DNA of 64,000 nucleotides from Octopus sinensis (taxonomy: Eukaryota). The notes under the pieces are model-generated. The model searched no databases and was not told the DNA's origin. It saw only the letters and a list, made by a program, of their open reading frames with translations. Positions 4,662 through 59,895 of the stretch are shown piece after piece. The translations under genes were made by a program, and so were the position numbers. Position 1 is the stretch's first letter, and every line of letters begins with the position of its first letter. Where the stretch lies: contig NW_021835467.1 of assembly GCF_006345805.1 (NCBI RefSeq), positions 4,395 to 68,394 on the forward strand, written 5' to 3'.

Positions 4662-6285
4662 CAGGGGTGTCAAACATGCGGCCCTCAGCGTACTTTGCCA
4701 AACATAAGTGCGGTCTGATTTAATGGCTATAAAATGCAAAAAATTATTCTTTATTTTTTTACATTTAATTAAAATTTTTAATTGTATTTTTAAATCGTGT
4801 CTGTTAATGTCACGTGCTTCTTCTTGAATAAAAAAGAAACGCTCCTTGAAAGATGAACGGAGAGTGTTTCAAGATAAATGGGAACTTTTCTATTTTTGCA
4901 CAATGGTTGATGGAAAAATACATTGTTTGATATGTAACAAGTTTATTGCTATATCGAAAGAATACAACCTAAAGAGGCATTATCAATCTAATCATCTATC
5001 ATACAATTATTTCATGCTCTTGAAAAAATTTATCTTGTTTAAAGATATTTCATTAACAAGAAACACTGCTGCCGAACACATTAATGAAATGGCATGAAAT
5101 TTGAAACACCAATTAAAGTCTGATTTGTTAAAATTCGAATATTTCATTTAGCATGCTCATTTTAATTTTATTATTCATCAGAAATATTTATGCTCAAAGA
5201 TATTAAAAGTGGAAAATACCATTAGTTTGGTCACGAAAACAGTAGACTATATCAGAGGTCATTCCCTCAACCACCGGCAGTTTAGTAAACTGCTGACAGA
5301 TATTAATAATCAGTTCAGCGACATTTCTTTTTATACTCCAGTCCGCTGGTTATCACTTCACAAAGTTGTTAAAAGATTTAAATAATTTTATTTATGGAGA
5401 TAAAAGGGCAAAACACAGACGAAATGAAAAGTCAATCTTGGATTAAACATTTGGCATTTGCAGTGGATATTACCACACATATGAACGATCTTAATTTAGA
5501 ATTGCTGGGCAAAGACAAGCTCATAACTTAGTTGTCAGATCATATCAAGTTTTTTATTTTGAAAATAAAATTATGGAAGTTTCAGCCATTAAATGAAGAT
5601 TTATCTTATTTTCCTACGTGCAAAGAGCTCAGGAGTACTGTTGATGCACATAATGTAATGAATTTTTCTCAGTATGAAAGACAACTAGAATCGTTGTTAA
5701 AGGAATTTCAAGAAAGATTTAATGATTTTTCGTCTTTTGAACAGCAATTTTCATTATTTGCATCACCATTCTCTTTTAATGTTTCCAATGCAGATGAAAG
5801 TTTACAAATGGAACTATTGGAAATCCAATCAGATTCCATACTTAAAGCTAAATATTTGGAGGTTGGAATACTTGCTTTCTTTTCATATCTTCCTGGAAAA
5901 TTTAAAAACTTTAAAAAGTTTGCAACAAAAATCATTGCTATGTTTGGTTTGACATATGTGTGTGAACAGCTTTTTTCATTTATGAAAATGACAAAAACTG
6001 GTCAAAGAACAAGACTAACTGATGAACATTTATCCTCTTTAATAAAAGTCGGAACTACACAAATAGCTCAGCCTGACATATCAAAAATTGTATCTAAAAA
6101 AAATGTCAATCCTCTGGAAGCAGCTCTCACCAAAATTAAAGGGCGATAATTCAATAATTTAGTTTCTCTTAATAATAAATATCAGAATTAATCTCCCCTT
6201 AATGAGAAATTATTATAAATGCGGCCCTCGAAGCCAAATTGTAACAAAATGCGGCCCTCAAAGCGAAATGAGTTTGACACCCCTG
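4662..6285 (+). mobile_element. hAT (Buster/Charlie/SPIN-like, GTF2IRD2-type) DNA transposon, internally deleted transposase
   Basis: 14-bp TIR CAGGGGTGTCAAAC at both ends and a perfect 8-bp TSD CTCTATAC (4654-4661, 6286-6293). Transposase pieces: zf-BED-like CLIC...KEYNLKRHY, VRWLS, and dimerisation motif TYVCEQLFSFMK...RTRLTDEHL. Confidence 0.93.
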
Positions 6286-6510
6286 CTCTATACCATTTGA
6301 GTTTATAAAAAAACCCAAAACAAAAAAATCACATAAAGACTCATTGGTACTTTTGCATTTCATCCTGCACGAAAATAGCCTCTAAATGAATTAATGAAAA
6401 TTTTTATGAATATTAGATCGAAAATTTAAAAAATTGAACTATGCCGATTTTATAAATTTTATTCTAGCTATTTCTAAGGCAACCCCTAATACTCGTATCT
6501 GAACAGTAGA

Positions 6511-6710
6511 CCCGATTAGTTCGGAAGCAAAGATCATTAAAATGAAGACTGTAACGGTGTTGACCATCTCTAGAACTTCATAAATTTACTAAATGTCAAT
6601 CTCGGGTTCCATTCGATTATCTGATCTCCGAAGGTATCTCAAGCCAGAAAAGTTTGGACGACACTGTCACAGTCTTCATTTTAATGATCTTTGCTTCCGA
6701 ACTAATCGGG
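6511..6710. repeat. 50-bp inverted repeat (6511-6560 / 6661-6710) with 100-bp spacer
   Basis: CCCGATTAGTTCGGAAGCAAAGATCATTAAAATGAAGACTGT(A/G)AC(G/A)GTGT matches its reverse complement at 48 of 50 positions. Confidence 0.9.
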
Positions 6711-6926
6711 TTGAATTGGTATTGCATTTTGTTCCTTCTGAGCCGCACTGGCGATTGGTTGGATGGCTTCCAGATAATCACAACTAAGTTACAATTAACT
6801 TAGTAGAATTTATTAGTTTGTTGACTTTACTTAGTAGTTTGACCCTAACACTATTGATTTGTTGATTTCATATGATTAGTAGTTACAATTAACTTTCCTT
6901 TTCAAAAAGGTAAGTTCGACATATTA

Positions 6927-8777
6927 TGTGACATGGGCGGCTGGATACGTATGGGCAACCGGTTACCTGACGTGACCTTGAAGCTTAACTTAATGTCAAT
7001 ATTGTAATTAATATTAAACTTCAAAGAATAATAACTTGTTAATTATTTTTTAAGTCTGGACATTGGCACAATCGAAATTTTGCTCATCGAATTTTTTATC
7101 TATTAAATTTAAATGTTTAAACTACCTCAACGCGATTGTTCGATAAAATACTGATAATTTCTGCAGATGGATAATATGGAGATTCAAACTTATCCAGTCG
7201 CAACGAAGGATTTGTTCCAAAGTCTTTTTTAACTCGAACCTAAACATTAATTTTTATGCATACCTTATCACCAACACTAAATTCATACTTACTATTGTGA
7301 ACATTCATTTTTCTGTTCATCGCTTTGTAATAATTAGAATTAGGATCAATGGGGTTGATTTCGAACTGAAATCTTTTCGGACTTGTAAACGAATAATTAC
7401 AGTCATCTACATATAGAAATTCAAATTACATGAATTTTCAATTGGACTCGGACAATTGTTTGCATCATCGACTTGATCAGGACTCAACAAATCATTACTT
7501 GAATTATCTAAGGAATAATTTTATAATTACAACCATAAAATATTGTATTTATTCCACTTATTCCCCGGTATCTTTCAAAAGGGCTCTCATTAGAAGATGA
7601 GTGGACAGAAATGTTATAACTGTACACTGCATTTTCTAATTTTTCCAGCCACTTTTTATTATCATTGTCGATCATTTTTGCCATTTTTCTTGTAATTGAC
7701 TGGTTGAAGCGTTCGACAATCCCTTGTGAGCGGGGATTGTTTGGCCTTCCGTGAATTCGTTTGATATTGAATTCCTCACATAGATTGGTCATTTCACGAT
7801 TCTTGAATTCAGTCCCATTATCGGACTGAAGAAATTGACACGGACCATTTAAGAAAAATAATGATCTAAGGTTTTCACAAACTTCATTTGAGGACTTAGT
7901 GTAGAGCAGCCTCGCAAATGCAAATCTATAAAAATTGTTAAAAAAACTAACCTGCTATATACGTCAATGACCGTTAAAATCCATTTAAAATTTTTATTTA
8001 TAGTAGAAAAACTTTTCAGATCTATAAGATCTATCTGAAATCTTTCATTTGGGCAAGATGCAAAGACATAGTTATTTATATCTCCAATCTAGGATTTAAA
8101 AAAGTTAAAACTTTTAAGGGTCGCGCAAATTTACAAATTTCACAGTTTCGAATGACTTTTCGAATAATCTCGTTTTTAACTGTGAAATATCGTTGTCGAC
8201 ATTCATATTCAATTTTGTTAACTCCTCCATGCGAGAAGTCATGCAAACTATTAGCAACGATCTCCATTTCGGGTTCATTGTCTAGGCAAATCACTAGCTT
8301 GTGATCTGAATTCGCACATTTAAGATACAATCTATACATTTACAATTTGTATGATACCTTTCATTAATTACAGTAAAATTTTCAATTTTCTTAACTAGTC
8401 TATATTTTTTTTGCTTTGTAAGATGTTCAGGAAATTTATCCTGTAAAGCATCTTTTAAAATTTGATATTCCAAACTATTCTTTACATAACCTTTCTACGA
8501 GGACATTGCTGCAAAATATACTTGCACGCTAGAAATAACTCAAGAAATTTAGGTTTTCCACCAAAAAAATTAATTTCTGATAATTAAATTCCTACAAATA
8601 TAATTTTTTGTCAAAATGAGAGAGTCTTTAGCTAATTTAGTAAATTATTAAATGATAAGAATGAGTCGCGGTCTAATTAAAAGATTTATAATTTAATCCC
8701 ATCAATGTCATAATTGCACATTTCAAGGTCACGTCAGGTATCGCGCGGCCCATAGGTATCGCGCAAACCATGTCACA
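6927..8777 (-). mobile_element. Ginger-like (Ginger2/TDD-type, rve integrase) DNA transposon with imperfect 56-bp TIRs
   Basis: Ends are TGTGACATGG...TACCTGACGTGACCTTGAA (6927-6982) and its reverse complement (8722-8777), with TG...CA termini and TA on both flanks. It encloses an HHCC plus DDE integrase gene. Confidence 0.85.
7043..8506 (-). CDS. Integrase-type transposase split by seven 23-26 nt introns (430 codons after splicing; TAG at codon 4, true N-terminus uncertain)
   Basis: Introns at 8332-8357, 8089-8111, 7926-7951, 7508-7533, 7407-7429, 7240-7263 and 7100-7125 are all GT-AG. The spliced frame gives HDFSH...CEIC, FQIDLID, TVIDVYSRF, LQSDNGTEF and QGIVERFN, ending in TAA at 7043. 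Confidence 0.85.
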
Positions 8778-9649
8778 TATGTCAACATGTCAAAGTTAAA
8801 AAGGGATCGGAATATTTATGGTTATTATGTCAAAAATTTATGTCAAAACAAAAAGTCAACATATTTTTTAGAGGATCTCGTTGCGATCTTCATAAGAAAC
8901 TGTTTCGCGGACCTCAGAATTGACGACTCTCATAATTGATTTTGAAAATGAAGCACTCACGATATTTAAACAGTATTTTTATTCCCATTAATCAATTATG
9001 TTGTAATGAATCAATTCATACTTAAAAATCTACAAGTTTTAGGCAAGCTTTAATTTTGTGTTTATACTTTGACTGTGTTGTCAAAACACAGTCGGAACCA
9101 GTGCAACTCCGCGCCTGAATGCCATTGAACGTATTTTAACTGCGGATCATCGGATCACTGAACGAATTACCGAGGTTGCCGGGAATCTCATTTTACTAAA
9201 AAGTCGACATTGTTGTAATGAACGTTATTTTTATCTTCCGCGTCTGTCAGTCTTTTTTGCGACCGGCCCAGGATAGAACTGAACATTGGCAGTGACTATT
9301 TGCCCCAATCAATGTTGTTACGGACTTCCACGACGTTGATGTCATATCTTTTCACGGGGTACGATCTGTCTCCTGTGCAATGGTCCATATTCAACATATA
9401 TATGGATGCAACTTTGGAATTCCTCTCCCACATGCACCTGTCCACAAGTGAAAGTATTGATCGTTTCAATATGGTCGTACGAAGATATGTAGTCGCCTTT
9501 CTGGATAGAAACTGATGACGAAACTGATGAAATCTTGGGGATCTTGCGCAAAGAAGACCAAAACTAGGCTACCTAAGCTAGTCAGACAGAAGGTGCGACT
9601 AGATAGCTTAGAAAGAAGTGTTTTGAAACTGAGGACTCCCGAAGTCTAA

Positions 9650-13922: not shown

Positions 13923-14737
13923 TTTTGCTCATTTAGTATATAATTGTGCATTTAAAATAAAAGTAAATTATTTCGAAGTCAACAAATAGATTGCTTGTGT
14001 CGAACCATTAGTTGTAAAAACAATTATCGAAGACAATTATTTAAAGAAATTGGGTACCCACCAGAACCAATAGTTAAGAAATGAGGGAGCTGGCTTATAG
14101 CTGTTTTTTTACTATACTACAAACTTGCCAAATGTTATACACTTCCTTCGAAGGAGATTTTTTGCTTATTAAAAGAGTGAAAGAATGTTTATTTAGTTAA
14201 CAACTTCATGAAGATCTAACGACGCTAATATCACAATATTCACCGTTATTACATTTGCTTGATGATTTAGAATCGACCAATTTTACTATAAAAAAAGCAT
14301 TCAATTATTTGAAAACATTGGATTTTAAAGAAGACGTGTGTGGAATAAAAAATTATATTATCGAAAGGATGAATTCCAATGATATCACAAAAATTGTGAA
14401 TTTCGATGATCATTCCATTTCACCTTTAGATTATTCTTTGTTGATTGAATGTCAGGCAACATCGTGCGCAGTAGAACGATCATTTTCGATTCTTAACAAA
14501 ATCTTAACCAAGGATAGGAATTTTAAAGTGGATAATGTAAAATATTACTTAATTGTAAATAACTCGATAAACGATGAATAAAAATACTTTAAATTTTCAT
14601 AAACGTAGTTTATATATGAAAATAAAGTAGTATTTTTACGGTCAATTATTTGGTCAATTTTTAAAATTTTAAGGTCAATTACATTGACTTTTTAAGGGCA
14701 ATTTTTATTTTTTTAAGTCAATAAAAATGTTGCTCTA
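13923..14737 (+). mobile_element. hAT family-2 3' half with right TIR
   Basis: Near-copy of the 3' half of the element at 41371-43040 (CQATSCAVERSFS motif). It ends in ATGTTGCTCTA. Confidence 0.85.
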
Positions 14738-14797: not shown

Positions 14798-16980
14798 TTT
14801 TTTTTTAAATTAGAATTCAAAAACTGAACACGTATTTAATTAGTAGCAGAGGATAAGATGGAATGGCAATTCCCACGCAAAATGGCTATTGATATGCGTT
14901 GGAAAAGCCATGTCCGTTCCCGATGATCATTTCTCCTTCTGCTTGCCAGGTCCCCCAGTTTAATAAGTTAAATGATGATATCCTGCACTTTCAAGGAATT
15001 CCGAAGAATATCCTTTCCTTTGACCGATGATATGTTATTGGCCCACAAGAAAATAAATTTTATGATATCCTCCAAAGGTACTCTGGCTCCCTCTAGCCAA
15101 GTTCCTGTACATTTTTACAACGTATTTTATACCGGCTTTCAATCCAGAACTAGTTCTGCACTCTCTTTTGTGACAATACCATAACGGTGGCGTCTTTTGG
15201 TAAATTGAACAGGTTGAGTTCACGTCACATTTAAATTTATAACACGTGGGATTATTATTTTATTTTATTGTAATTAATTATAAAACACATATATTATCAC
15301 TGGAAAAAATAGTATTATTTTGAAACTCGCTAAAAAGTGGCTGTAGACTACTACAAAAGTACCGGAATTTTTTAGTTCTGGGACCGAGGACTCCCGACGT
15401 CTCCACTGCGGTGAGATAATGCACTGTATTTCTTGATTTTTAGCGTTTCGGCCAGGTTAGCTGCGGAGCCCGGCTCTGCGGCCATTTTCGAAAGGGAAAG
15501 TCGTTAGGCCGTCAGGACGTTTACCATCCTCCCGAACCTGGCCGACCGGTTCCAACTGTGATGGGAATCCGGCAGTTTCAAGGGTCCGCTTAACTATGTC
15601 GTTCAGGGCAATGTGTCGGGGAAAGCGTCCGGAGCTTTTCTGGCACGATAATGGGTGCAATTCAAAGGGGTCAACAGTCGATCCACAGCGGCACCGGTGT
15701 TTTCGGCATACGTTTAGTCCCAGGCGCAATGAGACGACGATCCTCAGGCAATCGTCGTTCAATAAGGTTCCAATAGATCCCATAGGGATAGCGGTCAACC
15801 AAGCCCCCGAATATGGTTGCGAGGGAGCCAATAAACAAGCCAAGTGATGTTGGTTAAACTTAGGCTTGAGGTTGTTCGACTTCTGATCACAGAGAATCCT
15901 GTCCCATTCGTCTTGTGCGTGTGTATTCTGTGGAAGCTCAAGAGACATCCCAAGCCAGCGACTTTCTGCGGCGACTGACTCTGAGTCCATAGGAGATTCG
16001 GTAACGGGTTGGAGAATCTCTTGGACAAGGGTGCTCGTGGCATGTGTAGGAGAAAGAAATGCTGGCAAAGAAAGGTCAGTGGCTGACCGCACACCGATGC
16101 CGCCACGACCGATGGGGAGTGTTGCCTGTTCCCAGCCAAGATCGTCAAAGAAGGCATTACATATTGATTCGAGGCAAGTCCTGAGAGCATGGTCGAATCT
16201 GGAGAGGCTTTCGGGATTGGCAAAGCATGGAGCGCTTCTAAGTGTAAACAATAGTTTGGGGATGGCGAAACAGTTCCTCAATAGAAACAGGGCCGAATGG
16301 GAATCGATGATACCAAGATTACGGGACATTGATACAAGGTTTGGTGTTTTTTCTGATAATATCCAAACGACACCGGTGTTAAAAATCGGGGAACCCAGAA
16401 TCTTGAGATTACTGGGCGAGGTGACATGGATGTTGGGAAGTAATGATTCGATAGAACCATGGGCAACGGAGAAACGGTAGACATCATAACTGATGTTAAA
16501 GATTTCAGATTTTGGGGAATTGATTTCGAGGCCAATTGCGTTTAATGCAGAAATTAAAACTCTCAGGTCGTCAAGAACGGATTCGAGAGTACCTCCGATA
16601 GTGGCATCGTCCAAATACCACGCATTGAAAACGAAGGATACACTTCTGGCAACGGGATCGATTGCCAGGGCAAAGAGAAGAGGACCCAGAGGGTCGCTTT
16701 GTTGGACACCGTTGCAGGACGAGATTGAGTGATCGCCAGCGATAAGGAGGCTGGGGCGACCGTAAGTCAATGCGACCAGGCGGGCAATAAAAGGTGAACG
16801 CCGGATAATAGATTCAAATACTACGTCCCGACGAACGCTGTTAAAGGCGTTAATCAGGACCAGCTTGACTAGAAGGCAAGGGTTATTCGGCCTATTTTGT
16901 GAGGCGGAAATGAGCTTCCTTGTTGCATGGACTACGGCTTCACAGCCGCCTTGGACGCCGACTCCAAGTTGTATTGGGCA
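14798..16980 (-). mobile_element. 5'-truncated CRE-clade retrotransposon (RT + zinc knuckle + RLE), interrupted by a Merlin-like insert and itself inside a hAT fragment
   Basis: Motifs PIQLGVGVQGGCEAVVHA, NAFNSVRRD, GVQQSDPLGPLLF, WYLDDATIGG, CRCGSTVDPFELHPLSC, KRPDG and AVETSGVLGP. The frame resumes after the insert as DHRERTWLFQRISIAILRGNCHSIL, with poly(A) at 14798-14806. Confidence 0.88.
14955..15355 (-). mobile_element. Merlin/IS1595 (ISXO2-like) transposase fragment with a 28-nt intron
   Basis: Removing the GT-AG intron at 15105-15132 gives WYCHKRECRTSSGLKAGTWLEGARVPLEDIIKFIFLWANNISSV, typical of the Merlin N-terminal Cys region; a GPGK remnant follows. Confidence 0.6.
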
Positions 16981-17195
16981 AAATTATTTGAAAAATTGGA
17001 TTTTAAAAAAGACGATTGTGGAATACAAAATTAAAATTAACAAAAGGATGAATTTTAATGATATCACAAAAATAAAGAATTTTAATAATCATTTCATTTT
17101 CGGATTTTTCTTTTTTGATTAAATGTCAGACTGCATCCTGCTCAGTGGAACGATCATTTTCGATTCTAAACAAAATCAATAAAAATGTTGCCCTA
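16981..17195 (+). mobile_element. hAT family-2 right-end fragment (continuation of 14746-14797)
   Basis: Matches the 3' transposase sequence and ends in TIR ATGTTGCCCTA. Confidence 0.75.
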
Positions 17196-17599: not shown

Positions 17600-19938
17600 A
17601 TGGACCTTGGAAATAATAAATTGGAGTATAATTTGAACATCGAGTCTGAACTAACTAACCTTCCCTTTCCTGGTGACCGAAATATAGAAGAAAAGCTGAT
17701 ATCGACAATGATTACTCCTCCTTCCATGCCTGAAGGAGGGTTTGGATGGTTGACAGTTATTGCCACATTCTTCTTGAATTTTACGGTTGATGGGATTAAT
17801 GGTTCCGCTGGAATTATCCTTCCTGAACTTCAGCGTTACTACAACAGTTCGATCGAAGAAACGACATTGGTCTTGTCTCTGCTCATTCTCTTCACATACA
17901 TTTCGTGTATTATTCTTTTGACTAGATAAGTCTCCTTACATAGCTCCAATGGCTGCTATTCTGATGGATAAACTAAAACCGCGAACTATTGTAATATTCT
18001 TTGGATTGATAGCTACTCTGTCAGTGACATTGACTTATTTCGTTGTTTCCGTGAAACTCATTGCCTTCACATTTGGAGTACTTCCAGGTCGCAAAAGTTT
18101 AATTTAATAAATTTTAGGTATCTCTTTCAGTATGTGTGTAATGTGTGCTCAAGTTATGATTAGTCTTTATTTTGATAAAAAACGGGCTCTGGCTTACAGT
18201 ATTACAGGAGTAGGAAGTGGACTAGGGTCCATTCTAATGCCTTTTCTAACTTCTATGATTGTTAACAAGCATGGATTTAGATTCATTTTCTTCTTTTGGG
18301 GAGGACTTTGTTTTTTATTGCTCATTCTTGGACCCTTATATTTTCCTCTAAAATTGGCCGAAGATTACGAAAACAATTTCAAAAATCAATCAGAGAAAAT
18401 AAGCGTTGATTTGGGTGATGATTCTTCTGCAGTATATATGAGAGATCTGGGAAACGTCAGCATTGATCCTTGGTTAGAAACCACGAATCTTATTTCAGTA
18501 AAGAATCATTCGATGTGGATCAATTTTATCCTATTGAGAAAAGGTCAACCGACACTATCATTTGCAGCGACTCCAAGCCTCGAAAAATAAATTTCAAGAC
18601 TTATTATCAGCAAAAAACAAAAGTTTTTATTTCTTAGATTGTTGGTAGAAAATTTATGAGAACTTTTCTTTTATGAATAATTTGAACAGAAACGCAACTT
18701 TTACCACGAAACCTGGAATATTTAGACAGGTCTCGACTGCCAAAGAATTGGAAGAGATATACAACGTCCTTAGTTCCCGACATAACTATGTTCCAAAAAC
18801 TACTCCACAAAAAATCAATCATTTAAAATCACACGCAAATAGTTTTTATAATCAAGTTGTCAATTATAATAATGTTAATTCAACATTCTCTGGTTTACTC
18901 AGTCAAATTAACGACGTAATTGAACGCTCGAAATCAGGAAAGAAAAATATTAAATTTAACAGTCACAGCGAAGAAGATATTTTCAGGCTAAAATACGGAG
19001 ATAGAAACATAATTTCTTCAAATAATTCTTTTATTGACAAACAAACATTTAATTTCCTCAAGAAATGGATTGAAAACATGATGCTGAAACCTATATACAG
19101 GATCGATATTTTTTACATGGGGTCTAGAAAACAAATGATAAAGAAAGGACTATTGAATGATAAATCTGATTTTCTCGATAACATCCACGTTCCTAAAATA
19201 GAAATGTACCATACTATTTTTGGCAATTTAAAACATATCTTGTCCATTGTACTCGACTGGTCTATTTTCCGACTTCCTCGTCTCGTTCTTTATTTTGTCT
19301 CCATTAGTTTATTCAGTTGGGGCTCGTTTATTCCAATGGTTTTTATCGTACTTTTCGCAGGAGAATTTACACCTTTGGCACAATACTTGCCATCTATAAT
19401 TGGTTGATTTTAATTTTATATTTTTAGGAGGAGGATCAATCCTTGGGCAGCTCTTTTGCGGAGTGTTTATTAGTATTTACAAATTTACTCCGTCCAGGTT
19501 GAGTGAATTTGCTTTCTTTCTCTCTTCCGTTTCCTGTGCTATTATTGCTTCATTAGAAAGACATTTCTATCCATTGGTCGTTGTTTGTTTGTTTTTTGGT
19601 TTTACATATGGTCTGTAATTTTTTCTAAATATTTTTAGGGATTTTATTGACTACGTGGCAGTCTATTTTGAGTGAAATTGTTGGTCTTCGAAGACTCACT
19701 TCTTCTCTATCCTTTTATCTTTTTTTCAGAGGAATCTCCGTTTTTATAGGATTATACACTTCAAGTTTACTTTCCGTGTGTATTTTCATTTTTAGGCATT
19801 TTAAGCAAAATCATTGGCCTCAAAGGCACATTTTATTTCGCATCTGTTTTACTTTTTGTATCAGCTATTGTACAGTCATGTATGAGATGCATTAAATCTG
19901 ATAAGTCTGATTTAAAAAATACTCAAATTTTATTTTAA
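17600..19938 (+). CDS. MFS monocarboxylate transporter (SLC16 family) with a large central loop
   Basis: PEGGFGWLTV, YFDKKRALAYSITGVGSGLG and two hydrophobic helix bundles; micro-introns of 26-37 nt. One frame junction near 18500-18560 is unresolved. Confidence 0.88.
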
Positions 19939-22764: not shown

Positions 22765-23323
22765 ATGGTAAGACTAAAAATCATCATTTGGATAGAACTG
22801 TGACAGAATCATTGAAAGACTAACAATATACTCAAAATTAAGATGGTTTTGTACATCACTTCTACTTCTATGCTTTGCATTGCGTATCATAATCGGTCAA
22901 GGCTGGTACGTGGTTGCCTATATTTTGGGCCTCCATTTGCTGAAATGGTTTGTTGAATTTATTTCTCCACGTTTTTTACCTGATGATAATTATAACCTCC
23001 CAAATCAAGTGGAAAAAGAATTTCGACCATTTGTAAGAATACTTCCTGAATTCAAATTCTGGTAAATTTGTTTATTTTTTTTTGGTTGCGAGGAACTACA
23101 TCCATTTCCATCGGACTCGTTTTGACTTTATTTAACTTTCTCGATATACCTGTATATGTTCCTATTCTTGCGGGCTACTTTCTCTTCTTATTATTTTTTA
23201 CACTTTTCGGGCGTGTTAAGGTAATCAATGTAATTGTTTTTTTAGCATATGATCAATCACGGATACCTTCCCTTCGACGTTGGCAAGACAAAGTACACTC
23301 CAATTGACATTACAAGTATTTGA
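22765..23323 (+). CDS. RER1: RER1 ER-retrieval receptor; start approximate
   Basis: RIIIGQGWYVVAYILG, LPNQVEKEFRPFVRILPEFKFW, LDIPVYVPIL and C-terminal HMINHGYLPFDVGKTKY. Confidence 0.92.
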
Positions 23324-23429: not shown

Positions 23430-25200
23430 CAATCAATCAACAACTTTATTTAGGTAACAACGAATAGTATGTGGGGTAATAATTAATGAAACGGTAAGGC
23501 TTGCTTACCGACTTCTTCCGCGAAACAAAAAGAAAGGAGGGACCCCAACCTCTCAGTATAGAATTACCTTTGCAGGTAAGTCCCAGTGACTGTTGACCAG
23601 AGTTTGTAGTTTTTGATGTTTTTTTCAACGATTTCCCCCACCGTAGGCGTTTTAGCCTCGAGCCATGGGGGAATCGGCCATTCCAGGCTTTGGGAGTAGG
23701 CGATTTTTAACGCCAGTCTCCGAGTTTTCTCAAACTTCTCGATAATGGAACTCCTCTTTCTAGAGAAGTACCATGCCTCTTTTCCAAATATAAGTCCTGG
23801 TAAGTACACCGTGTTAAAAACATAAAGGAAAGTATCTGGTTCCAGATTTAACTTTCTTAAGCAAAACAGTGCGTTTGTTGCTTTCTTTTTTTCGAATTTT
23901 CGCATTTTCAGTGTATTTACCATTTTCTTCAATTTGCAATCCCAGGTATTTTATTGAATGTTGTCGTGGTATGTTAGTAATCAGACAAGGTGAATTTTTA
24001 AGATTTCTACTTTCTGTGATTCTCAACAGGGCAGACTTCTCACGTGCGACAACCAGCATGTTATTTCTGCACCAAACTTCGATTTCTTCCATATATGACA
24101 GCATTCGTTGTTCAGATAAGGCAGGTTTCGGTGAAGCATCGAGGATGACCACATCATCATTAGAATTTCCGTCCGTACATTGTTTGGGGAAGGTAGATTA
24201 CTCATGACAATGTTAAATAACAGAGGACTGAGTACTGATCCCTGGGGGACACCTCTTTTTAATTTTAGCTCATCCGAGTCGTGGTTCAGTAAGCTTACCA
24301 CCGATCGTCTGTCGCGGAGGAAGTCCTGTAACCATAGGAACAGTTCTCTATCTATCTGACACTTCGCCAGATGTCTCAGAAGGCCAAAATGCCATACACT
24401 GTCGAATGCCTTCGAAATGTCAAGACAGGCCATCGTCAGAGATCCCTTGGTATCCAGAGCCTTCATAATTAACGAATTTACCGTATAATGACAGTCCCCA
24501 CAAGAGCGATTTCTGCGGAAACCCCACTGCACATTTTTTAGAATATTTTTGCTCTCCACATGTTCCGAGAGTCTCCACAGCATTATCCTTTCCATGATTC
24601 GGCTGATGGAAGGAATCAGGCTTATCGGCCTATAGCTTGTTGGCAAATAGCGAGGTTTTCCCGGCTTTAGTATCATCCTAACCTCCGTTAATTTCCAGGA
24701 GGAGGGGACGTATCCCAAATGAAGACTACAGGAGAAGAGACATCTCAAATATTCATAAAGTTCCCTCGGTGCTTCTTTGAACAATCGCATTGTTATCTTG
24801 TCTCTTCCCGGGGCATTATCCTTTGAGCATTTTATTGCGTCCTCCACGTCTTTGCAAGTTATAGCTTTCGTGCACAAAGGCAACAAGCTGAGGAGTCCAT
24901 CCAATTCTTTTTTCATATGACACAGTGCTGGGCCAGATAACTGTAAGTCCGGGTTGACCTCCTGAGTTTCTTTAAGACTGTCTCCAAATATATTTGGGAT
25001 TTCTTCAAGAGAAGCGGGGGATCCATCTTGATTTAACAGTTTCGGTATTGTTTCCTCGGATTTTGAAGTGGATAATTTTCCGAAAACCTTCCAAAAGTTT
25101 GGATTTGCTTTATGTAATTTATTGCACTCAGCTTTCCATTTTTTATTCTCAGCAGCAATTGTGGTGAAACTGATGGGAATGATAATAAGGTGAAACTGGT
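23430..25200 (-). mobile_element. APE-type LINE ORF2 (RT), 5'-truncated and frameshifted
   Basis: APGRDKI, YRPISL, QWGFR, LDISKAFDSV, GVPQGSVLSP and a YxDD region; frameshifts at about 24150 and 23930. Confidence 0.9.
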
Positions 25201-25908
25201 GGGAATGAAATATTCGTTTTATTTCAAACAATATTTTTACCAGAATTATATGTGGTACCGATAGTGTAAAAAGTTTTGTTTTTAAGAAAGTTTCTTCTCA
25301 TTAAAAACCACCATACACTAAACTAAATTCCAAAGACAATTTTAATATTTGTTGGATCTAATTTTGTGCTTACAGTACCGAAGAGCATCTTCGTAATATT
25401 GAAGCTCGGAATTTAGACAAAAATCGATCTTAACCACCAACTGCCAAAAAGAATTAACGAGTAGTTATATTATTAGTGTATATTAAATTATTTAAAAAAG
25501 TGACAAGTTGTCTCAAATGCTTTAAATATTACATGATAAAATAACCATTGAAAAAGCAACTAGAATCTGTTGTACTGAATGGAACTCTTGAAAGTATGCT
25601 AATTAAATACAAGCATGGGATGAAGGTATCTGGTGATAAATACGCCTCTGCTACCGACCAACTTGTGAAACTGACATGCTTTTGGGACACGTCAATTGAA
25701 GCTATGGGACATATAACAACTTTGTTTGGCGGAGAGTTAGAGAGCGATAAGAGTAAGGAACTAATAGCAGATTCTCCCCTTAAATGAAAGAGAGATTTCC
25801 AACAATAAAGCGTGAAAATGTTAATTAAATAATGTAACCTTAGTTAAATTTGATTTGGTTTCAACAAAATTTTTTGTAACTTAAAAAGTGACAAATCAAT
25901 GAAATATA

Positions 25909-30604: not shown

Positions 30605-31473
30605 ATGTCAGCAAATTGTTCACTAATTGAAATATCCAAACTCCACCCACTTGCAAACCAACTCTCCGGCCACGGACTCGACTCCACTGCACTCAAATGT
30701 AGTCCTTATTTCACATCAAAGTCTTCTTTGAAATACCTGGTGGCTTCATTGCCAAACGACTTAAAAAGTATTCTCGCGGTTACCAGGAGGGTGACTTTTA
30801 CCAAAATATTTCCCACTCTGCCGACCAGTTTTTCACCAAATTGTCCTCATTTTCCCCCAAATTCCATGGCCTGGCGCATGACAAACAAGGAGGTGTGGCA
30901 CTTCTTTATGTGCAGGGCAGTACATTTACTTGGAAAACATATTCCGGAACTTCACCAAACCGACATCCGCCGACATCAAAATTGGGTTCCTCAAAAAAGA
31001 AAAGTACCCGGCAGCCGACCAAATCATGTTTCAAATAAGTGGAATGAAAGTATTCGAGAGGAAGCACTTTTAGGTCCACCAACCTGACGGATCCTGCCAC
31101 ACCCTCTACAAGTCGGACGGAGCCAACTGGACGAGCATACTATCAGGGACGGTGAGGGGTCTTTGTCATTTCAGAGTTGCAAAAGTTTTTTCTGCAAGAC
31201 CACAAGTTGGGGGACGGAAGGAGACGGAAAATATTGGCTGAGTTAAGGGACATGCTCACTCTTTTGAAGGCCCAGTCAGCATGGCACTTTGTTTCGAGTT
31301 CGGTAATAATCGCCTACGAGAACGAGAACGTGTCCAATTGGAGTGAGGGACAGGTGGCTGTCAACATCATTGACTTTTCCCACGCTTCTCCTGCCCAGTC
31401 GAGGGACATTTATTCAATCAATGGATTGGCTAATTTAATTAATTTCATTTCGAATTTATTCGATTTGGTTTAA
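30605..31473 (+). pseudogene. Inositol polyphosphate kinase (IPMK/IPK family), frameshifted paralogue
   Basis: KPTSADIKIG (PxxxDxKxG), SSSVIIAYE and IIDFSHA. GGACGG-AGCC lacks one C relative to copy B near 31120 (real loss or assembly error). Confidence 0.8.
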
Positions 31474-31929
31474 TCAGACTCAATCACTTATTCTTTCATT
31501 TCACACAAATTCACTAATACATCTCCTAATTTGATTATTCTAATGACTATTCATTCAAAAAGATTACATCTAATTTATCTACCAAATAAAAAACAAGATT
31601 ATAGTTAGATAGCAATTCTACATTTTGCAAATTTGCCATTCCTTTCCCAAAGAATTAATTTTATTTTAACACTTTCCAAATAATTTCTGGATAAATAACA
31701 TTGAAAACGCCCAAAGATATATCAAAATATTCTGAGAAACTCTTATAATGTACACTCTAATTTGAAATAATAAATTAAGTAAGTTTATTCAAATTGTTTT
31801 TTATTTGTATCAAAGCATTATCTTTTAGGAGATTGTGTTTTCAATATTTTCCATAAGGTTTTCAGAATTATAACAGCATTAGTTCGGCTTTATCTCCTAT
31901 TGATTGGGACAAGATACATAATTTCTAAA

Positions 31930-33350
31930 AATAAATACATCGTAGATTTACCATTAAGTTCATCTTCGACAAACGATGCCTCGTTATTTTTATCTAAATT
32001 ATAAATAAGATTATAACCTGGTATTTCATGAATCACAGTGTTAACTCCAGAAATATCCCTAAACTTTTAAAGGGGGTCTCATTGATCGCCGAGTGGTGTG
32101 TCGTATTATAGGAAAAAGTTACTTTGTCTAAAAATTGTTTCCAATTTTTACGTATTTTCTTTATGTAGAGAAATTGTACAATAAGACCGGTTTCAGTAGC
32201 ATGTTGTATAATTTGATTTTTAGAGAGGTCGAAATTTGTTTGTAATATGTCCGCTGTATTGTTTCCAATTTTTAGTTCCTTCTTTATTCATCAGTTTTGC
32301 CATACCACGTGTTAATGTTTGGTTAAAGCGCTCAATTACACCCTAATTTATTTCAAATTTATAAACTTGTGACTGGGGATGGTTTGGTCTTCAATGAATA
32401 TGTTTGATTTTATTTTCTCCACATATCTGATCCATCAGTTGATTTTTGAATTCCAATCCGTTGTCTGTTTTAAAAATTTGACAATATCCAATTCTTCTAA
32501 CATCAATAAGATCCGCCTGGAATCTTTTATTTGGACTTCTTGCCGTTACATGATAATTAGAATCGGATACCTAAGTATATTTAATCAAAAATACTTTTAA
32601 CGGCCCAGCAAATTTAAAAATTTCGCAGTCTTTTTTAATTTGTTTGATAATAGGGCGTTTCACAGTAAAATAAAATTCACAGCACTTCTTATGAAGCTTT
32701 AGTATTCCCCAGTGACATTCTTGGTGAATATTTATTTATTAAAGACCAAACACGGGCAAAGTCAGTTAATTATAGTTATTCCCGTGATCGCCGATCCAAA
32801 CGAGGGAGATCCTTCTGAAAGGTTCGATCCTGCCCGCATGATCGGCCTGAGACGACGATGTCCCAGGGTCTGAGAGCTAGAAGTTCTTTTTCGGTAGGCA
32901 TTAAGTGCCTCCTGAGCGTTGCCATATCCGATTGGAATTTTCCGAACTGACATGGTGGACCCCATAACGCCACGCTAAGACCGGAAGGTAATAGCGAATG
33001 CCAGTGTCTTCATCTCCATTTAATTGTCCAAAAAGATAACAAATTTGTGTTTTTGGTTATTATCGTCCTTTAGATAGAGACTACGAATTAGGAATATCAA
33101 ATATACCGATCATCAATTATCATAAATTGATTCGCTTTTTTAATAAGTTTGTATTTTTCGGATTTAGATGTAGTTTGTACGGGTATTTGGAGTAGTGCAT
33201 TTAAAATATTTTTATATTCACTGTCATTTTTCACGTAACCTAAGGATTGAGACTATATTAATACAACAACTTTTGGAAGATACCTTTTTTTAATTAAAAT
33301 GACTTAAACTGGTCGCCAGCGTGGTATGGTCGCCAGCTATGGGCGCGACA
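31930..33350 (-). mobile_element. Second, degraded Ginger-like element with micro-introns; right end ...GGGCGCGACA|TA
   Basis: IHQECH...DCEIFKFAGPLK, RFQADLID, TDNGLEF and PQSQGVIERFN; introns at 33081-33106, 32571-32594 and 32343-32366. Confidence 0.75.
32762..33000 (-). mobile_element. Probable LINE 3' stub inserted in the second Ginger-like element
   Basis: GC-richer island that interrupts the transposase frame and ends in a TAAC/TAAT-type tail like other LINE ends in this window. Confidence 0.45.
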
Positions 33351-33640
33351 TATTCCATGCTCTGTGGGTTACCACAGCTGCCTCCATGCGTACTGCAAAG
33401 CCCATCTAATAATGGCGACAGTCTGACGGCGACAGGAGCATTCGGTATCTGTTTATTGTTTCATTAACGCCATTAGGGACTTTGGTCTCCTGCAGACAGC
33501 ATACAGACATTCCATATCTTTTTAAATCCGTACATAGGTGTTGTCTTTTTAATGCGGAGGTAAGTCCTCTTTCATTAAACGATCCAATAGAAAAAAGGAA
33601 AGATTAAGTGCATTGGTCGAGGTGGTGACGTCCCTCTATT
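33351..33640 (-). mobile_element. LINE APE endonuclease N-terminal fragment
   Basis: FSIGSFNERGL...DLKRYGMSVCCLQETK...MGFAV. Confidence 0.8.
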
Positions 33641-33812: not shown

Positions 33813-34711
33813 ATGTTGGATGATTATCTAAGTGCATACGAAAATAGCATTGAGTGTGTATAATTTATTTTGAAAAAAATATAGTTCATCCGTCGATTCC
33901 GAAAAATATTACCAAGTCTTGGGCGGATTGCTTTGCTTGGTACATTTGTGGACGATTCGTTCCGGATGGTAACAAAGCATGGAGATCAGCGAAACTATTT
34001 TGTGAATGTATGGAAAATAGGAAGAGCAGTGGCTACATTTATGATAATAATAAATTTATTGACTCAAATAATTCCCGTTGTGATGATAATGATGCGACGG
34101 AGAGTACGGATAGCCTGTTGTGTTCTGTTATTTAACATAATATATCAAGTATTATATTTACTAATCGTAGCACATCGTCTATCGGATGCGACTGTTTGCT
34201 ATATTCAAGTTTGATAAGCGATAACCAGATAGAACCCTTTCCCTTTGCGGTGTTGTGCTACTCCTTTATGCTGAATCGTTTGTGGAGAAGATGACTAATG
34301 TGGCTGGTCTTCCAGAACTGCAAAACGATAAAGGGAAAGAGTATTTCAAACTTATTGGACGAATATTTGTTATACTCATCCTGTTCAGTCTTGTAGATAC
34401 GTCAAGCATTTTAAGCTATGTACTATCATACTATAATATTTCAGGGAGTCATTGCGCCAATCTGTTCAATTCCTGCCATTATGCTTGTCCTCGGATATCG
34501 TGCTCAGTTTGCTTCTCTTCTCCTTTCAATTGTTCTCGTCGTTAATATGCTTGTTGCCCACCCTTTCTGGCTTCCCAGCCTTAACTCATATACGGCCGAG
34601 TATTACTCTTTTGAGTTTTTCCAATCCTTGTCTGCGCTTGGCGGATTTCTCATTGTTGTTGCTCATGGACCAGGAGTAATCAGTTTTGACGAGTTTAAAA
34701 AAATGGAATAA
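33813..34711 (+). CDS. SURF4: Surfeit locus protein 4 (Erv29) cargo receptor
   Basis: LPSLGRIALLGTFVDDSFRM...DQRNYF, FFQSLSALGGFLIVVAHGPGVISFDEFKKME* with a C-terminal dilysine. Confidence 0.92.
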
Positions 34712-37252: not shown

Positions 37253-40200
37253 ATGCAAGATCATAACAAATCTAAATTGTCAATTTCGTCTGTCTCGCAA
37301 CAAAATGATCAGATCTATTCTCCAGCTCAATCAAACCAGATAACTCCAGAAGAAAGAGAAAACTGTCGAAAGTGGCTGTAATAGGCCTTTTTTATTTTAT
37401 TTAGCACAAATAAATTAATTGATAATAATACAGCTTACTCTTCTGAATTAACCAATATTGTAGCCCGTAAAGAAATGGAGATATTTGAGATATCTCTTGG
37501 CAGAGTTTGCTAAAGTGAATTAATTGGTAGGTTGACTACCGAAACCGTTTGCTTGAAGTATTGCAGAAATTACAAAATAGTCCTGGAAGCATGATAAACC
37601 TGAGAGCCCACGTAGATGAAAAGAAGACCAAAAAAAGTAAGAGAATGCGATGAAATTGTGAGATGTCAGCAGTGAAGACATAAGCGAGGAATTTTTGAAA
37701 GTTGTAGATATTCTGTGGGATTCCGTCCCCGATTCATTCGTTTTCCGTTACCCTGTGGATCCTGTAAAAGACATGGCTGAGGTTGATTTTTGGTCGGATT
37801 TCAGGATTATTATGACATAATAAAATCCCCAATGGATTTGTCGACACTCAAAAGCAATTTGTCTGGGAAGATGTACACTTGTCCGTGGAAATTGATTGAT
37901 GATGTTAATCTCATTTTTTCAAACGCACGGAAATACAACGGATCGAAGAGTAATATAACTCGAGCGGCAATGAGAGTAGAAAAGAGGTTACATGAGTAGT
38001 TGTCAGCAAAATTTAACGAAGTGGGAGATGAGGCGATGAATAGATTGGGCTACTGCTGTTCGAGGACTTATTTATTTAACCTTCGTGTGCTTTACTGCTG
38101 TACTTCTTTAAGTTGTCAGATTGGGGCAGATGCTGATTATTTCTCATATAAAAAGTATATATTCAAAATTTATATAAGGGAGGAGGAGGAATACGTGTGT
38201 TGTGTCAAGTGCTTTAATTCGGCCGAGGAGAAAATCACCATATCACCTGACTCGACTCAACTCCCCAAACAAGACTTTGTCCAAGCCAAAAATAATGTAA
38301 GAGAGCCTGAGCCTCTCGTGGATTGTGTTGAGTGTGGTCGCCGTGTGCACCAAGTGTGCGTACTTTACCACGAGGAACTTTATTCTGGGGGGTTTGTGTG
38401 TCGCATGTGTATGGAGAGTCCTTTTTCACCAAAGTTTACATGCAGAAGTAAGTCTATGTCTGATTTGTAGACCTTCCTCAAACGAGGTTGAGCGTGTATA
38501 TTGAAGAGAGAATTAATACCTTTCTACGAGCGGAGAGTGGTGGGATTGATTTTGGGACGGTCTTGGTGAGGGTCGTCTCCTCCACCATAAAAGAGTGCAG
38601 TGTGAAGCCTCTGTTCAAGTCAAAGTTCGGGGTAGACATGCCGGACGTATTTCCATACAGAGCAAAGACTCTTTTTGTGTTCCAGGTGCGTGGTGGGAGG
38701 GAACTGGCATTCTTTGCCTTCCATACACAGGAGTACGACTCGGAGTGTCCTGAACCTAATAAGCGGTATATCTATATCTTAATTGAAGGCGTGTATACAT
38801 CTCCTATCTTGACTCAGTACACTTCTTTGAGCCAAAATTCATCCGGACTCGGGTATATCACGAAATTCTAATTTCTTACATGGACTACGTACGTAAACTG
38901 GGGTTTGGAGTGAATTAAATGCTAGTTACGCGTGGGTGCACATCTGGGCATGCCCTCCAGGTGATAGAGACGACTACATATTCTACTGCCATCCTTTTGA
39001 GCAAAAGACTCCTACGGCTAAACGTTTGATTGAATGGTACAAAGTAATTCTTAACAATGCGATAAACCAGAAGGCAATTCGTTCATACCAAGTAAGTTTG
39101 TTTTGCTAAGTGGTAGGACCTACACAGTTGTGCGCATGAGAACGCAATAACTTGTCCAACTCAAATCCCGTATATGGATGGAGATTTCTGGCCCGCTAGA
39201 ATAGAGGAAATGATCAAAAGTGACGAGGAATGTAAAAAAGAGAAAAAAAGTAGTTTGTCGGACAAGTTGATGAACATGCTTGACAAGCAGCGAAGTGGCT
39301 TCTTTGTTATTGAATTGCATTCGAGCAGACTGAATTGTCACCTCACAACAATCGTCGACCCTGATCCTCCGATGAAGTGTGAGCTCATCGACAGTCGCGA
39401 TTCTTTCCTTACCTTTTGTCGAGATAAAAACTACGAGTTCTCCACCAAAAGAAGAGCCTTTTATTCTACTCAATCCATTGTAGTTGAGTTGTGTCTCCAT
39501 CACTTGATGTTTCACTGCAACAATTGCCAAAAGGAGATTGTACATGAAAGACATCACTGTAATCAATGCAGCGACTTTGACTTGTGCCAAATTTGTGCAG
39601 AAAATAATTCGCATCCTCATCCTTTAGTCAGAATTGGCCTCGATAAAGCAGACACCTCCACCATAATTACAGATGCAGCAATAGAAAAGTGGAAGGGTAA
39701 AGTGGGACACACTGTTTTCTGCCACGACTCAAAATGTGGGCGGCCTCTCTGTTCTCAGTATCGAGAATGTCTACTTCCACATTATATGAATAACATGTGT
39801 CCTCATCGTCAAACATGCAAACTTTGTAGAATTATTATTCGAATTTATGAGACACATATTTTGGACTGCACTAACCAGCATTGTGGAGCTAAATTGTGTA
39901 ATTTGTTCAAAAGACGCTTAAAAAGTATGCAAGCACGGAAACATGCAAGAGAACAAGATCAACTTTTGAGAAGAATGAACACTATGAAAATTGCCAATGG
40001 AGATAAACAACTTCTGAAAACTAATCAGCCAATTACTCGCACACAAAATCCCTTAATGCCTAACTCTCCTTTCCTAATTCCTCAGCCCAAACGTCCTCTT
40101 CTCATTCAAACCAATTCTGCAGTACGCTTGTCTCCTATTAATTCACCCCTCCCAGACTTGAGTATCAAGAATAAGTTACGAAACGGTCGATTTCCTGATT

Positions 40201-43333: not shown

Positions 43334-43542
43334 CCCTCAGGCTCTCGACTGTTCTTTGAGTTACTTATTTTTTTTGTTCTCATTATCATCTACAAAAAAA
43401 GCTAGAAAGTTCACTGCACAAGTTATTCAAAAATTATAGTCCAATTTTACAAACATTTATTCCAGGCATTCTGATCGTCACGGCACCCGCCTTCAATTTC
43501 AACACCTGGTCAACTACATGATCTCTCTCCAATCACAATGAA

Positions 43543-58141: not shown

Positions 58142-59895
58142 TGAATAACAGATTCTTTGATTATCAAAAATTGAGTCTTTAAAAAAAATAAAATAAAAAC
58201 TTTGTCAAAACATCATCAGCCAATCAATGTGCAAAAATAATATTTCAGTTAATAAAAAATTAATATGTTAATATAGTATTTCGAATGATGCTTTCTATAA
58301 TTATCTTATTTCTATAAATACATTTGATCTAAGCGCCCGAATGACTTTTTTCGAAATTTTTTCAAATTGAATTTTTTGCATTGACTCAGGACAGACCGAA
58401 AAGCGCTTATTAAATAATTTTCGTAAAAATATAAGCCCTTGGCCTAAAGTTTAGGCCTTCTTCGGTCTCTTCGATGAACGTTCCCAAGTTAGACTCAATG
58501 GCCGCACTTGGAAAAGTTTCCTTCGTTGTTTTGTTTGTAAACCGAGACTTTTGGCATTCTTTCAGCGGGGTCATTTTAAACTTATGTTCTGTACGCATAC
58601 TCTCTAATGTATTCCGAATAACAATAGACAGAATGTAATTGGTTTAATGTTTAGCAAATTCATAGTAGACCCAATGATCCAAGGAAGTGGAGAATTATTG
58701 AATTCTCCAGTCAGAAAATTACAAGATCATTATCTAAGATAATTCCCAAAAACAAGTTTTTGACAAAAAACATAAAAAACAGTTTATTTTTATAATCTGT
58801 CTTCTCATTTCTCAGCAGGTAACATTACAAAATATTTTTGGCAATACTCCATTTTAAAAATATCATGGAATTAATGGATTCAACAACATTTTATGTCAAA
58901 ACACAGTTGAGATTAATACAGATAGTGGAAGCTTAAATGAAATAAATACAATTTCTTTTTTCGTGAAGAAAAACTAAATGATGAAATTTTTTAATTCAAA
59001 TAATATTTAAAACATAAAAAATGTTATAAAGCTCCAGCGGATAGAATCGTCTGGTTATTTTTGCGGATGATCGTCGTCAAGAAACGCGGAAACAACCATT
59101 AAATCTCACAACGGCCTTTCATGCATAAGGAAATTAACTAAAAAATTATATATTTCTGGCTAGGCTTCTGTATATTTACGCTCTGTTCCATGCTTCCAAT
59201 GCAACTCTAAATTAGTCAAACTAGAATTGATAGTTCGGGTTTGTTCCAAAATAGTAATTGTTAATTTAAGTTCTTGTGCGTTATAACTTTAACAAATTAT
59301 AAAAATTTAAAGTAATTTCTGTTAATTTTTTTCAATGTTCATTCAGGTAACCCGTAGGAATCGGTAATGTCCAGTGCTGTGTCATATTATTTCAAAGAGT
59401 AGCCATTAAATATTGAAATGAAAATAACAATTTATTATCGCAATAAGATACAAAAGGAGAGTCATTGTAGCTACAGATAGTCGATTAACTATGAAATCTA
59501 GCACTTCAAACCAATGTATCCTGCTTATATACGTAATTTACGGACAAAAATGTTGGCCGATTCGGACATTTCTTGACATTACTCACTAACAAAATTCGAC
59601 TACATTTTTTTCGAAATTTACACAAACTAAACAGATGAAAAGAAAAATAGATTTTATAAAATTCGAAATGTACTTTAATTTTTGATCAAAAATACTAAAA
59701 AATATAAATATAATGTACAAGATATTTTATAAGTAATCGATTTAATTAATCTTCAAAAAATAAAAAAACGACAAGATTTTAAAAATAAAGTATTGATGAA
59801 AAGAACAAATAAGACAAATTATTATATTTATTATACATGATTTTACCCAAATATATTAATTAACTCAAATATATATTTTCTATACATATCTGATA

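Follow-up and report, generated by a model that had tools for sequence, protein, structure and literature searches.

Whether a transposon whose interior shows only short open reading frames (ORFs) in all six frames is dead, or instead carries a transposase gene interrupted by very small introns, is the question raised by element A, a complete integrase-type DNA transposon of 1851 bp. It lies at 6927..8777 on the minus strand of a 64,000-nt stretch of DNA (hereafter the window; positions 4,395 to 68,394 of contig NW_021835467.1 in the Octopus sinensis assembly GCF_006345805.1) and runs from one terminal inverted repeat (TIR) to the other (termini TGTGACATGG...CCATGTCACA). Excising seven GT..AG segments of 26, 23, 26, 26, 23, 24 and 26 nt from this interior yields a single 1290-nt frame, from 8506 to 7043, of 429 codons and a TAA. 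An initial annotation of the sequence had placed exactly these seven introns and this frame, and its expectation that automated ORF-based annotation would miss the gene agrees with the six-frame view. We consider it likely that the seven segments are genuine spliceosomal micro-introns within a Ginger2-like DNA transposon.

The predicted gene, on the minus strand throughout, has eight exons. Exon 1 (8358..8506, with the ATG at 8506-8504) encodes residues 1-49 plus 2 nt and corresponds to an N-terminal extension domain; exon 2 (8112..8331, residues 50-123) contains the HHCC zinc finger (H80/H84/C113/C116); exon 3 (7952..8088, residues 124-168 plus 2 nt) carries the first catalytic Asp, D143 (QIDLID); and exon 4 (7534..7925, residues 169-299) holds the remaining catalytic core with D204 (SDNGTEF) and E240 (VERFN). 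Exon 5 (7430..7507) encodes a linker, the conserved C-terminal domain begins in exon 6 (7264..7406; NYYKAMNRKMNVH..VGDK), its SH3-like part continues in exon 7 (7126..7239), and exon 8 (7043..7099) ends with ..SRLKK and the TAA (7045-7043), giving a C-terminus that matches those of the homologs. Intron 1 (8332..8357, 26 nt, phase 2) and intron 2 (8089..8111, 23 nt, phase 0, after ..RPLK) have the position and phase of a 26-nt and a 24-nt intron, respectively, in a second copy described below, and intron 3 (7926..7951, 26 nt, phase 2) falls between ..DVYSR and FAF... Introns 4 (7508..7533, 26 nt) and 5 (7407..7429, 23 nt), both in phase 1, lie in a variable linker that permits no homolog check of their positions. 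Intron 6 (7240..7263, 24 nt, phase 0) is in frame and, if kept, ends translation at its own terminal TAG, and intron 7 (7100..7125, 26 nt) is likewise in phase 0. All seven introns open with GTA (four) or GTT (three) and close with TAG, they are poorer in guanine plus cytosine (GC) than the exons (19.5% versus 32.7%), and an exonic AG precedes four of them. Retention of any single intron creates a premature stop. The resulting density, seven introns in 1.29 kb, is 5.4 per kb of coding sequence.

Under a strict read-through rule (GT..AG segments of 23-26 nt, at most seven removals, standard genetic code), 1451 of 1452 nt of the real sequence were read, and none of 300 shuffled sequences read through (mean reach 47 nt, maximum 233 nt). 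A permissive search that admits any GT..AG segment of 18-40 nt threads alternative frames through AT-rich DNA and was not used as evidence; the decisive evidence is therefore homology rather than restoration of the frame. From the initial Met to the final Lys, the spliced product can be aligned with proteins of 423-458 residues (37-50% identity), and the alignment has no gaps across introns 1, 2, 3, 6 and 7, that is, at five of the seven junctions. The best matches, labelled "Gag-Pol polyprotein", were from Dictyocoela roeselum (47%), D. muelleri (44%) and Nosema granulosis (39%; P0001-P0003), which are microsporidia of amphipods, with contigs from SRA assemblies next. In pairwise comparison element A is 50% and 48% identical to the two Dictyocoela proteins, which are 51% identical to each other; both are intronless and match at 47-50% identity over 99% of the length.

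These data also bear on the reading that element A is a dead pseudogene in which the 23-26-nt segments are intron-like insertions or indels that were never spliced. GT..AG strings come easily in AT-rich DNA, as the alternative paths of the permissive search and a frequency of 1.5 GT[AT]..TAG strings per kb across the window illustrate, but all seven segments have the form GT..TAG with lengths within a 4-nt range, their removal restores gap-free collinearity with the homologs at the five sites that can be checked, two sites match in position and phase those of a paralog of 49% identity in which the intron sequences differ, no strict-rule shuffle reads through, and host genes use the same class of intron. 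The pseudogene reading is thus highly improbable.

The protein encoded by the spliced frame is a recognisable integrase. Pfam profiles matched rve (E=2.7e-15) and Integrase_H2C2 (4.3e-06), its sequence matches in the PDB are retroviral integrases, and H80, H84, C113, C116, D143, D204 and E240 all occupy invariant or nearly invariant alignment columns, with 35 residues between D204 and E240 (D,D35E); the HHCC finger and D-D-E triad are therefore intact, as first described. A structure model was made for the 50%-identical D. roeselum homolog (P0001), not for the spliced protein itself. In this AlphaFold model (mean predicted local distance difference test score, pLDDT, 84), an N-terminal extension is followed by an HHCC domain and an RNase-H-like core, and a disordered linker then leads to a C-terminal domain of SH3-like fold. 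Among known structures the model comes closest to the full-length integrase of prototype foamy virus (PFV), and Ty3 and other integrases also match. What had been noted as a C-terminal extension is indeed present, and is more exactly a linker followed by a conserved SH3-like C-terminal domain.

The micro-introns are of the size class of the host. In the SURF4 gene of the window, removal of GT..AG introns of 22, 24 and 25 nt (34149-34170, 34209-34232 and 34420-34444) gives one ORF to its stop, and the product of this ORF covers positions 14-265 of 267 in the Pfam SURF4 model (6e-58). The CBP/p300 and MFS genes have candidate introns of 23-28 nt (for example 39092-39116 in CBP and 19403-19427 in MFS), so that host introns in the window overall measure 22-28 nt, indicating that the host uses the same intron class as element A, in agreement with the initial annotation. 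Among animals, dicyemids and myxobolid myxozoans are the only groups with reported introns below 30 nt (PMC13644364, PMC6543705, PMC6736024): Dicyema sp. has a median intron of 27 bp and 4.9-5.3 introns per gene (PMC6543705), dicyemid host genes carry about 5-6 introns per ~1.15-kb coding sequence (PMC6736024, PMC6543705), and myxobolids have median introns of 22-27 bp (PMC13644364). The neighbouring genes are of animal type (CBP/p300-like with bromodomain, HAT_KAT11 and ZZ domains, SURF4, Rer1, an MFS transporter, a GH18 chitinase-like gene and an inositol polyphosphate kinase). The window is probably nuclear DNA of an animal whose introns measure about 22-30 nt, with a dicyemid most consistent and a myxobolid myxozoan as the alternative; a GC content of 34.7% and richness in transposable elements make the dicyemid fit somewhat better, given that D. 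japonicum has 36.7% GC and 49% repeats and is rich in long interspersed nuclear elements (LINEs; PMC6736024). Neither a CBP exon nor SURF4 gave any match in homology searches, and exact-protein look-ups were likewise empty, the host being very divergent and absent from the database. The introns of element A resemble dicyemid and myxobolid micro-introns in being GT..AG with a 5' signal reduced to GTa, A-rich interiors and a size close to the median of 22-27 nt, but those reports concern host genes, and none describes such introns within a transposase gene (PMC13644364, PMC6543705, PMC6736024). In the Rer1 gene (23062-23084, plus strand), colinearity between ..PEFKFW and LRGTTSISIG.. is restored solely by removing the 23-nt segment GTAAATTTGTTTATTTTTTTTTG; as an intron this segment would be GT..TG, lacking AG at its 3' end, and there is no canonical GT..AG solution.

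The initial proposal that element A is a TIR-bounded, Ginger-like DNA transposon with an integrase gene is supported. Its termini are TGTGA...TCACA, with TA adjoining both ends (6925-6926 and 8778-8779). On the minus strand, the 5' TIR has a core of ~56 nt at 8722..8777, with fainter similarity to 8693, and the 3' TIR a core of ~56 nt at 6927..6982, with fainter similarity to 7011. Both TIRs start with TGTGACATGG and are identical over the terminal 12 nt and over an inner 19 nt (CCTGACGTGACCTTGAA..); overall the arms are 81% identical over 58 nt and 71% when extended to 87 nt. Two GCGCGATACCT sub-repeats inside the 5' TIR may be putative transposase binding sites. The flanks (..ACATA / TAATA..) have TA alone in common, and in this single copy three of five positions agree for a 5-bp target-site duplication (TSD). 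TA precedes all five ends examined (both ends of element A, both of the D. muelleri unit described below and one of copy B).

Three observations concern the immediate surroundings of these ends. Just outside the 5' TIR, the left flank (8780-8870, minus strand) holds five TTGAC(AT) motifs in direct orientation within ~80 nt, at a window background of 2.9 per kb with both orientations summed, and the right flank has two GTCAA only, 81 and 99 nt out; the cluster could represent subterminal binding sites, scars of end duplication or a target preference. About 200 nt past the 3' end lies a 57-nt inverted repeat (6510-6566 / 6655-6711, 93% complementary, 88-nt spacer) that looks like a miniature inverted-repeat transposable element (MITE) or a hairpin. 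An inverted repeat between the two flanks, as expected of a larger element enclosing element A, was sought and not found.

The relatives share this architecture. The D. muelleri gene (L001) is a single uninterrupted ORF of 1353 nt (450 residues) within a unit of 1816 bp. The TIRs of this unit are 213 nt long, 98% identical and tipped with TGTCG, and TATTA stands next to both of them, compatible with a 5-bp TSD or with TA; a contig from Logan (L002) carries a like one-gene unit ending in inverted repeats. Recurrence of the one-gene, TIR-bounded layout points to one family of small integrase transposons with TIRs at their ends rather than to fragments of pol. The microsporidian elements thus agree with element A in protein start and end, in the one-gene layout of ~1.8 kb and in TIR tips of TGTC/TGTG preceded by TA; they differ in their uninterrupted ORFs, with long, nearly identical TIRs and a 5-bp flank in D. 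muelleri, whereas element A has seven introns and diverged TIRs. That element A could be a piece of a larger integrase element, either the pol end of a long terminal repeat (LTR) retrotransposon or a Maverick/Polinton, is suggested by the "Gag-Pol polyprotein" labels of its relatives, by its retroviral/Ty3 integrase fold and by reverse transcriptase (RT) ORFs elsewhere in the window. Such an origin is very improbable: inverted rather than direct repeats enclose one gene in 1.85 kb, the same layout recurs in D. muelleri and in the Logan contig, and the homologs share their start Met and C-terminus with no RT or RNase H adjoining. An ORF and Pfam scan between the TIRs of element A found no RT, RNase H, protease, polymerase or other gene.

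Among described groups, element A fits Ginger2/TDD most closely, judging by its termini, TIR length, H2C2 and DDE content, one-gene layout and AT-rich target. Ginger2/TDD elements have TGTNR termini, TIRs of ~50-300 bp, a 4-bp TSD (5 bp in TDD-4/5) and AT-rich RTATAY targets (PMC2836005), and the integrase domains of KRBA2 and SCAND3 derive from Ginger2 (PMC3575427); beyond the microsporidian clade the best annotated matches of element A are KRBA2-like proteins. As in Ginger2/TDD, the one transposase of element A is integrase-like and combines an H2C2 finger with a DDE core, the TIRs fall in the range of tens to hundreds of bp and have TGTNR tips (TGTGA), and the site is AT-rich. Unlike these elements, element A measures 1.85 kb (2.7-6.7 kb for the listed Ginger2 families), has no clean 4- or 5-bp TSD, its flanks sharing TA only, and is interrupted by seven introns; the one group for which Bao et al. 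mention any (1-4) is Ginger1 (PMC2836005). Ginger1 itself (4-bp CCGG/CCGT TSD, OTU or Ulp1 domain, 2.6-7 kb) was rejected on the AT-rich flanks, the absence of OTU/Ulp1 from the Pfam results and the 1.85-kb length, GingerRoot (6-bp GC-rich TSD, 100-150-bp TIRs; PMC6839031) on the AT-rich flanks without a 6-bp duplication, and Tc1/mariner, considered for the TA flanks, on the encoded protein, which belongs to the rve integrases, has an HHCC finger and is not of the DDE_3/Tc1 type with a paired-like helix-turn-helix (HTH). YPYY and GPY/F, motifs of Ginger1 and Gypsy, are missing from Ginger2/TDD. In element A no YPYY occurs upstream of the finger, and ..KFESPYYPS.. (..SFY.. in homologs) occupies the place of a putative GPY/F-like motif; Gypsy and Ginger1 have GPY/F where the SH3-like domain of element A has an S-P/F-Y motif.

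Introns in DNA transposons are already known, from Ginger1 (1-4 introns; PMC2836005), CACTA (PMC4158355) and the Tc1-like TLEWI of bivalves (bioRxiv 10.1101/656579), and the unusual part here is the intron history of the element A family. In all these cases the host must splice the transposase and intron content varies within a family; element A differs in its much higher intron density and extreme size class and, unlike TLEWI, has kept its TIRs.

A single lesion stands in the way of a complete product. The sole internal stop of the spliced frame is an in-frame TAG at codon 4 (8495..8497, minus strand), where the N-terminus of element A reads MSS*KGYVKN and that of the homolog P0008 reads M-SYKGYVKD, so that the stop faces a Tyr; the aligned Met is the start in every homolog. 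We take the codon to be a TAY-to-TAG nonsense mutation, with a base-call error as a possible alternative. The initial annotation had recognised it as the only lesion, which holds, and had suggested that it might instead be a splice acceptor, which does not: a 27-nt candidate intron, GTATATTTTGCAGCAATGTCCTCGTAG, does end there, but the frame upstream of it hits a TGA with no ATG, and the homologs start at the same Met. A ciliate code, in which TAA and TAG encode Gln and the TAG would be harmless, was ruled out by the TAA after ..LKK, which coincides with the C-termini of the homologs, and by standard-code ORFs of 392-508 residues, and a ciliate origin further by the animal-type neighbours (CBP/p300 with bromodomain, KAT11 and ZZ, SURF4, Rer1, GH18). 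On this sequence evidence the host uses the standard genetic code.

As sequenced, element A is unable to make full-length transposase and is probably not autonomous. It might nevertheless be intact and active if the TAG were an assembly or sequencing error, a polymorphism, read through, or bypassed by a start at M72, the next Met, which lies upstream of the HHCC finger. The stop is alone in 429 codons, no catalytic or zinc-binding residue is lost, the two TIRs end in the same 12 nt, and a pogo-like transposase of the same window likewise has one in-frame stop. However, TAG is the sequence as read, the host uses the standard code according to the long ORFs and to the element's TAA, which coincides with the homologs' C-termini, and a start at M72 would drop a conserved N-terminal domain for which the homolog model gives a confident fold; we therefore regard an intact and active element as unlikely.

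The search for further copies suggested at the outset was carried out within the window by tblastn with the spliced protein; it uncovered one decayed sister element and one fragment, and no second full copy. Copy B (31870..33352, approximate, minus strand) has a left TIR-like end, TATGTCGCGCC.., at ~33350-33305; its right TIR was sought and not found. It retains an intron of 26 nt in phase 2 (33106-33081), between ..IIDDR and LYLK.., at the position and in the phase of intron 1 of element A, and one of 24 nt in phase 0 (32594-32571), between ..AGPLK and VSD.., at the position and in the phase of intron 2; at these two common positions the intron sequences are unrelated. An extra GT..AG intron of 24 nt in phase 0 (32366-32343) separates HPQSQ from GVIERFN, where element A is continuous, and there are two candidate linker introns (32017-31994 and 31951-31925). 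Copy B is decayed by stops, a deletion of ~45 codons and two insertions. One of these insertions (32745-33000, ~260 nt), between ..MEMKTLA and NIHQECH.., is GC-richer than its surroundings, and the other (~110 nt, near 32150-32260) duplicates a KNWKQ motif. Fragment C (58634..58893, plus strand) is a remnant of the integrase family covering residues ~217-298, without an intron at the site between SQ and G. Copies A and B are 49% identical in amino acid sequence, and a neighbour-joining tree of 231 columns places them as sisters (90% bootstrap) in a group with the two Dictyocoela proteins (97%).

These copies are pertinent to the suggestion that the gene had been domesticated, that is, that it is a host gene derived from an integrase transposon, like KRBA2, SCAND3 or GIN1, and has introns as an ordinary host gene would. 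Its intron density equals that of dicyemid host genes (PMC6736024, PMC6543705), and intron-bearing Tc1-like genes of bivalves have been read in this way (bioRxiv 10.1101/656579). Yet the gene is still enclosed by TIRs ending in TGT..ACA, the same 64 kb hold a third fragment and a decayed paralog that keeps a remnant of its own TIR, marking a multicopy, decaying family, and codon 4 is a premature stop, so that domestication, one of the fates first considered for the element, is very unlikely.

With regard to the history of the introns, copies A and B share at least two positions while their sister clade and all recovered outgroups are uninterrupted, which makes intron gain the most parsimonious course. 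The initial annotation had held that older introns shrank to the host's size; as the ORF is uninterrupted in both Dictyocoela elements and in all full-length relatives recovered at greater distance, gain in the host lineage is more parsimonious than shrinkage on the present sequences. The introns were most probably gained in the host lineage before the split of A and B, with later turnover such as the extra intron of copy B. Tentatively, and with more room for doubt than for belief, the family, whose sister and outgroup relatives lack introns, may have gained at least eight micro-introns de novo once it had settled in a micro-intron animal (seven in A and one more in B), thereby reaching the host density of ~5.4 per kb. 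An alternative history is precise intron loss in the intron-poor microsporidia. Whether the introns arose as tandem duplicates of the exon sequence beside them was also examined, and no significant similarity emerged (all p>=0.058). In a KRBA2-like gene model of Littorina saxatilis (L003, 2275-4103), an intron of 1829 nt lies in phase 1 in a Gly codon (between ..ESQG and CIER), 1 nt from the extra intron of copy B and in another phase; this nearness may reflect a position of ancient origin, coincidence at a protosplice site or a gene model distorted by a nested insertion.

A pogo/Tc5-like transposase of the window (51586-52782, minus strand; Pfam DDE_1 at 5.8e-37 and HTH_Tnp_Tc5) has one frame of ~397 residues with a single TGA and no introns. 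Its continuous frame rules out that all DNA transposons of the window carry micro-introns, and the contrast would agree with the integrase family having been resident for a long time.

Several points weigh against the interpretation of element A as a micro-intron-bearing Ginger2-like transposon whose introns were gained. The splicing of its introns is deduced from sequence, and the boundaries of introns 4 and 5, lying in the variable linker, are not fixable by homology. Placement in Ginger2 relies on termini, domains and the KRBA2-like next-best matches, with reference Ginger2 elements compared by description, and element A is the one full-length copy within the 64-kb window. Its TIR divergence (81% identity over 58 nt) and the lack of a clean 4-5-bp TSD could mean that it is an old, immobile insertion despite its nearly intact ORF. 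Moreover, the protein database holds called ORFs only, so that intron-bearing relatives are fragmented or missing in it and a search is biased towards "intronless relatives"; this bias to intact ORFs weakens the parsimony argument for gain.

The remainder of the window is rich in other mobile elements and in duplicated host sequence. LINE-like ORFs with RVT_1 domains, uninterrupted in the standard code over 424-508 residues, occur at 15460-16983 (minus), 24026-25297 (minus) and 61755-63245 (plus), and hAT transposase fragments (Dimer_Tnp_hAT, BED-like zinc finger) at 4828-6146 (plus), 14201-14578 (plus) and 41507-42384 (minus), with near-duplicate C-terminal pieces at 14201-14578 and 41507-41818. 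Near-identical duplicates were found for the C-terminal exon of the inositol polyphosphate kinase (31156-31470 and 50274-50588) and for part of the histone acetyltransferase (HAT) exon of CBP/p300 (38464-38868 and 43522-43785), which indicates segmental duplication or pseudogene copies within 64 kb. The window yielded no tRNA genes and no Rfam hits.

For an intact copy, we propose that transposase would be made only from fully spliced mRNA, in which eight exons are joined by removal of seven introns, and that the protein would then bind the ~56-nt TIRs, cut the element out and insert it at AT-rich sites, both binding and mobility being predicted from the sequence. The control of transposition at the level of splicing and the restricted host range put forward with the initial annotation are reasonable hypotheses. 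Element A would most likely be a recently disabled copy, mobile only if an intact copy elsewhere supplies transposase, in an integrase family whose residence in the host genome would have been sufficiently long for at least two lineages, A and B, to separate.

These results leave the present understanding of how integrase-type transposons work unaltered. If the gain of introns is true, the family would be a datable, paralog-rich reporter of the creation of 22-27-nt introns in a setting where intron positions are otherwise thought conservative, the introns would lock the element into hosts that splice introns of less than 30 nt, and the Dictyocoela elements, at 50% identity, would be the trace of a horizontal connection between microsporidia and the parasite lineage. 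The presence of an intron-rich A/B lineage beside an intronless sister clade makes gain versus precise loss testable with more copies. In genomes with micro-introns, a class recognised among animals only of late, ORF-based calling of transposable elements and genes reports such elements as dead fragments, and splice-aware models that accept introns of 22-30 nt are needed before transposable elements are called inactive. Finally, a transposase that needs seven micro-introns to be spliced should fail in ordinary hosts, which would be a plausible barrier to outward horizontal transfer of the family.

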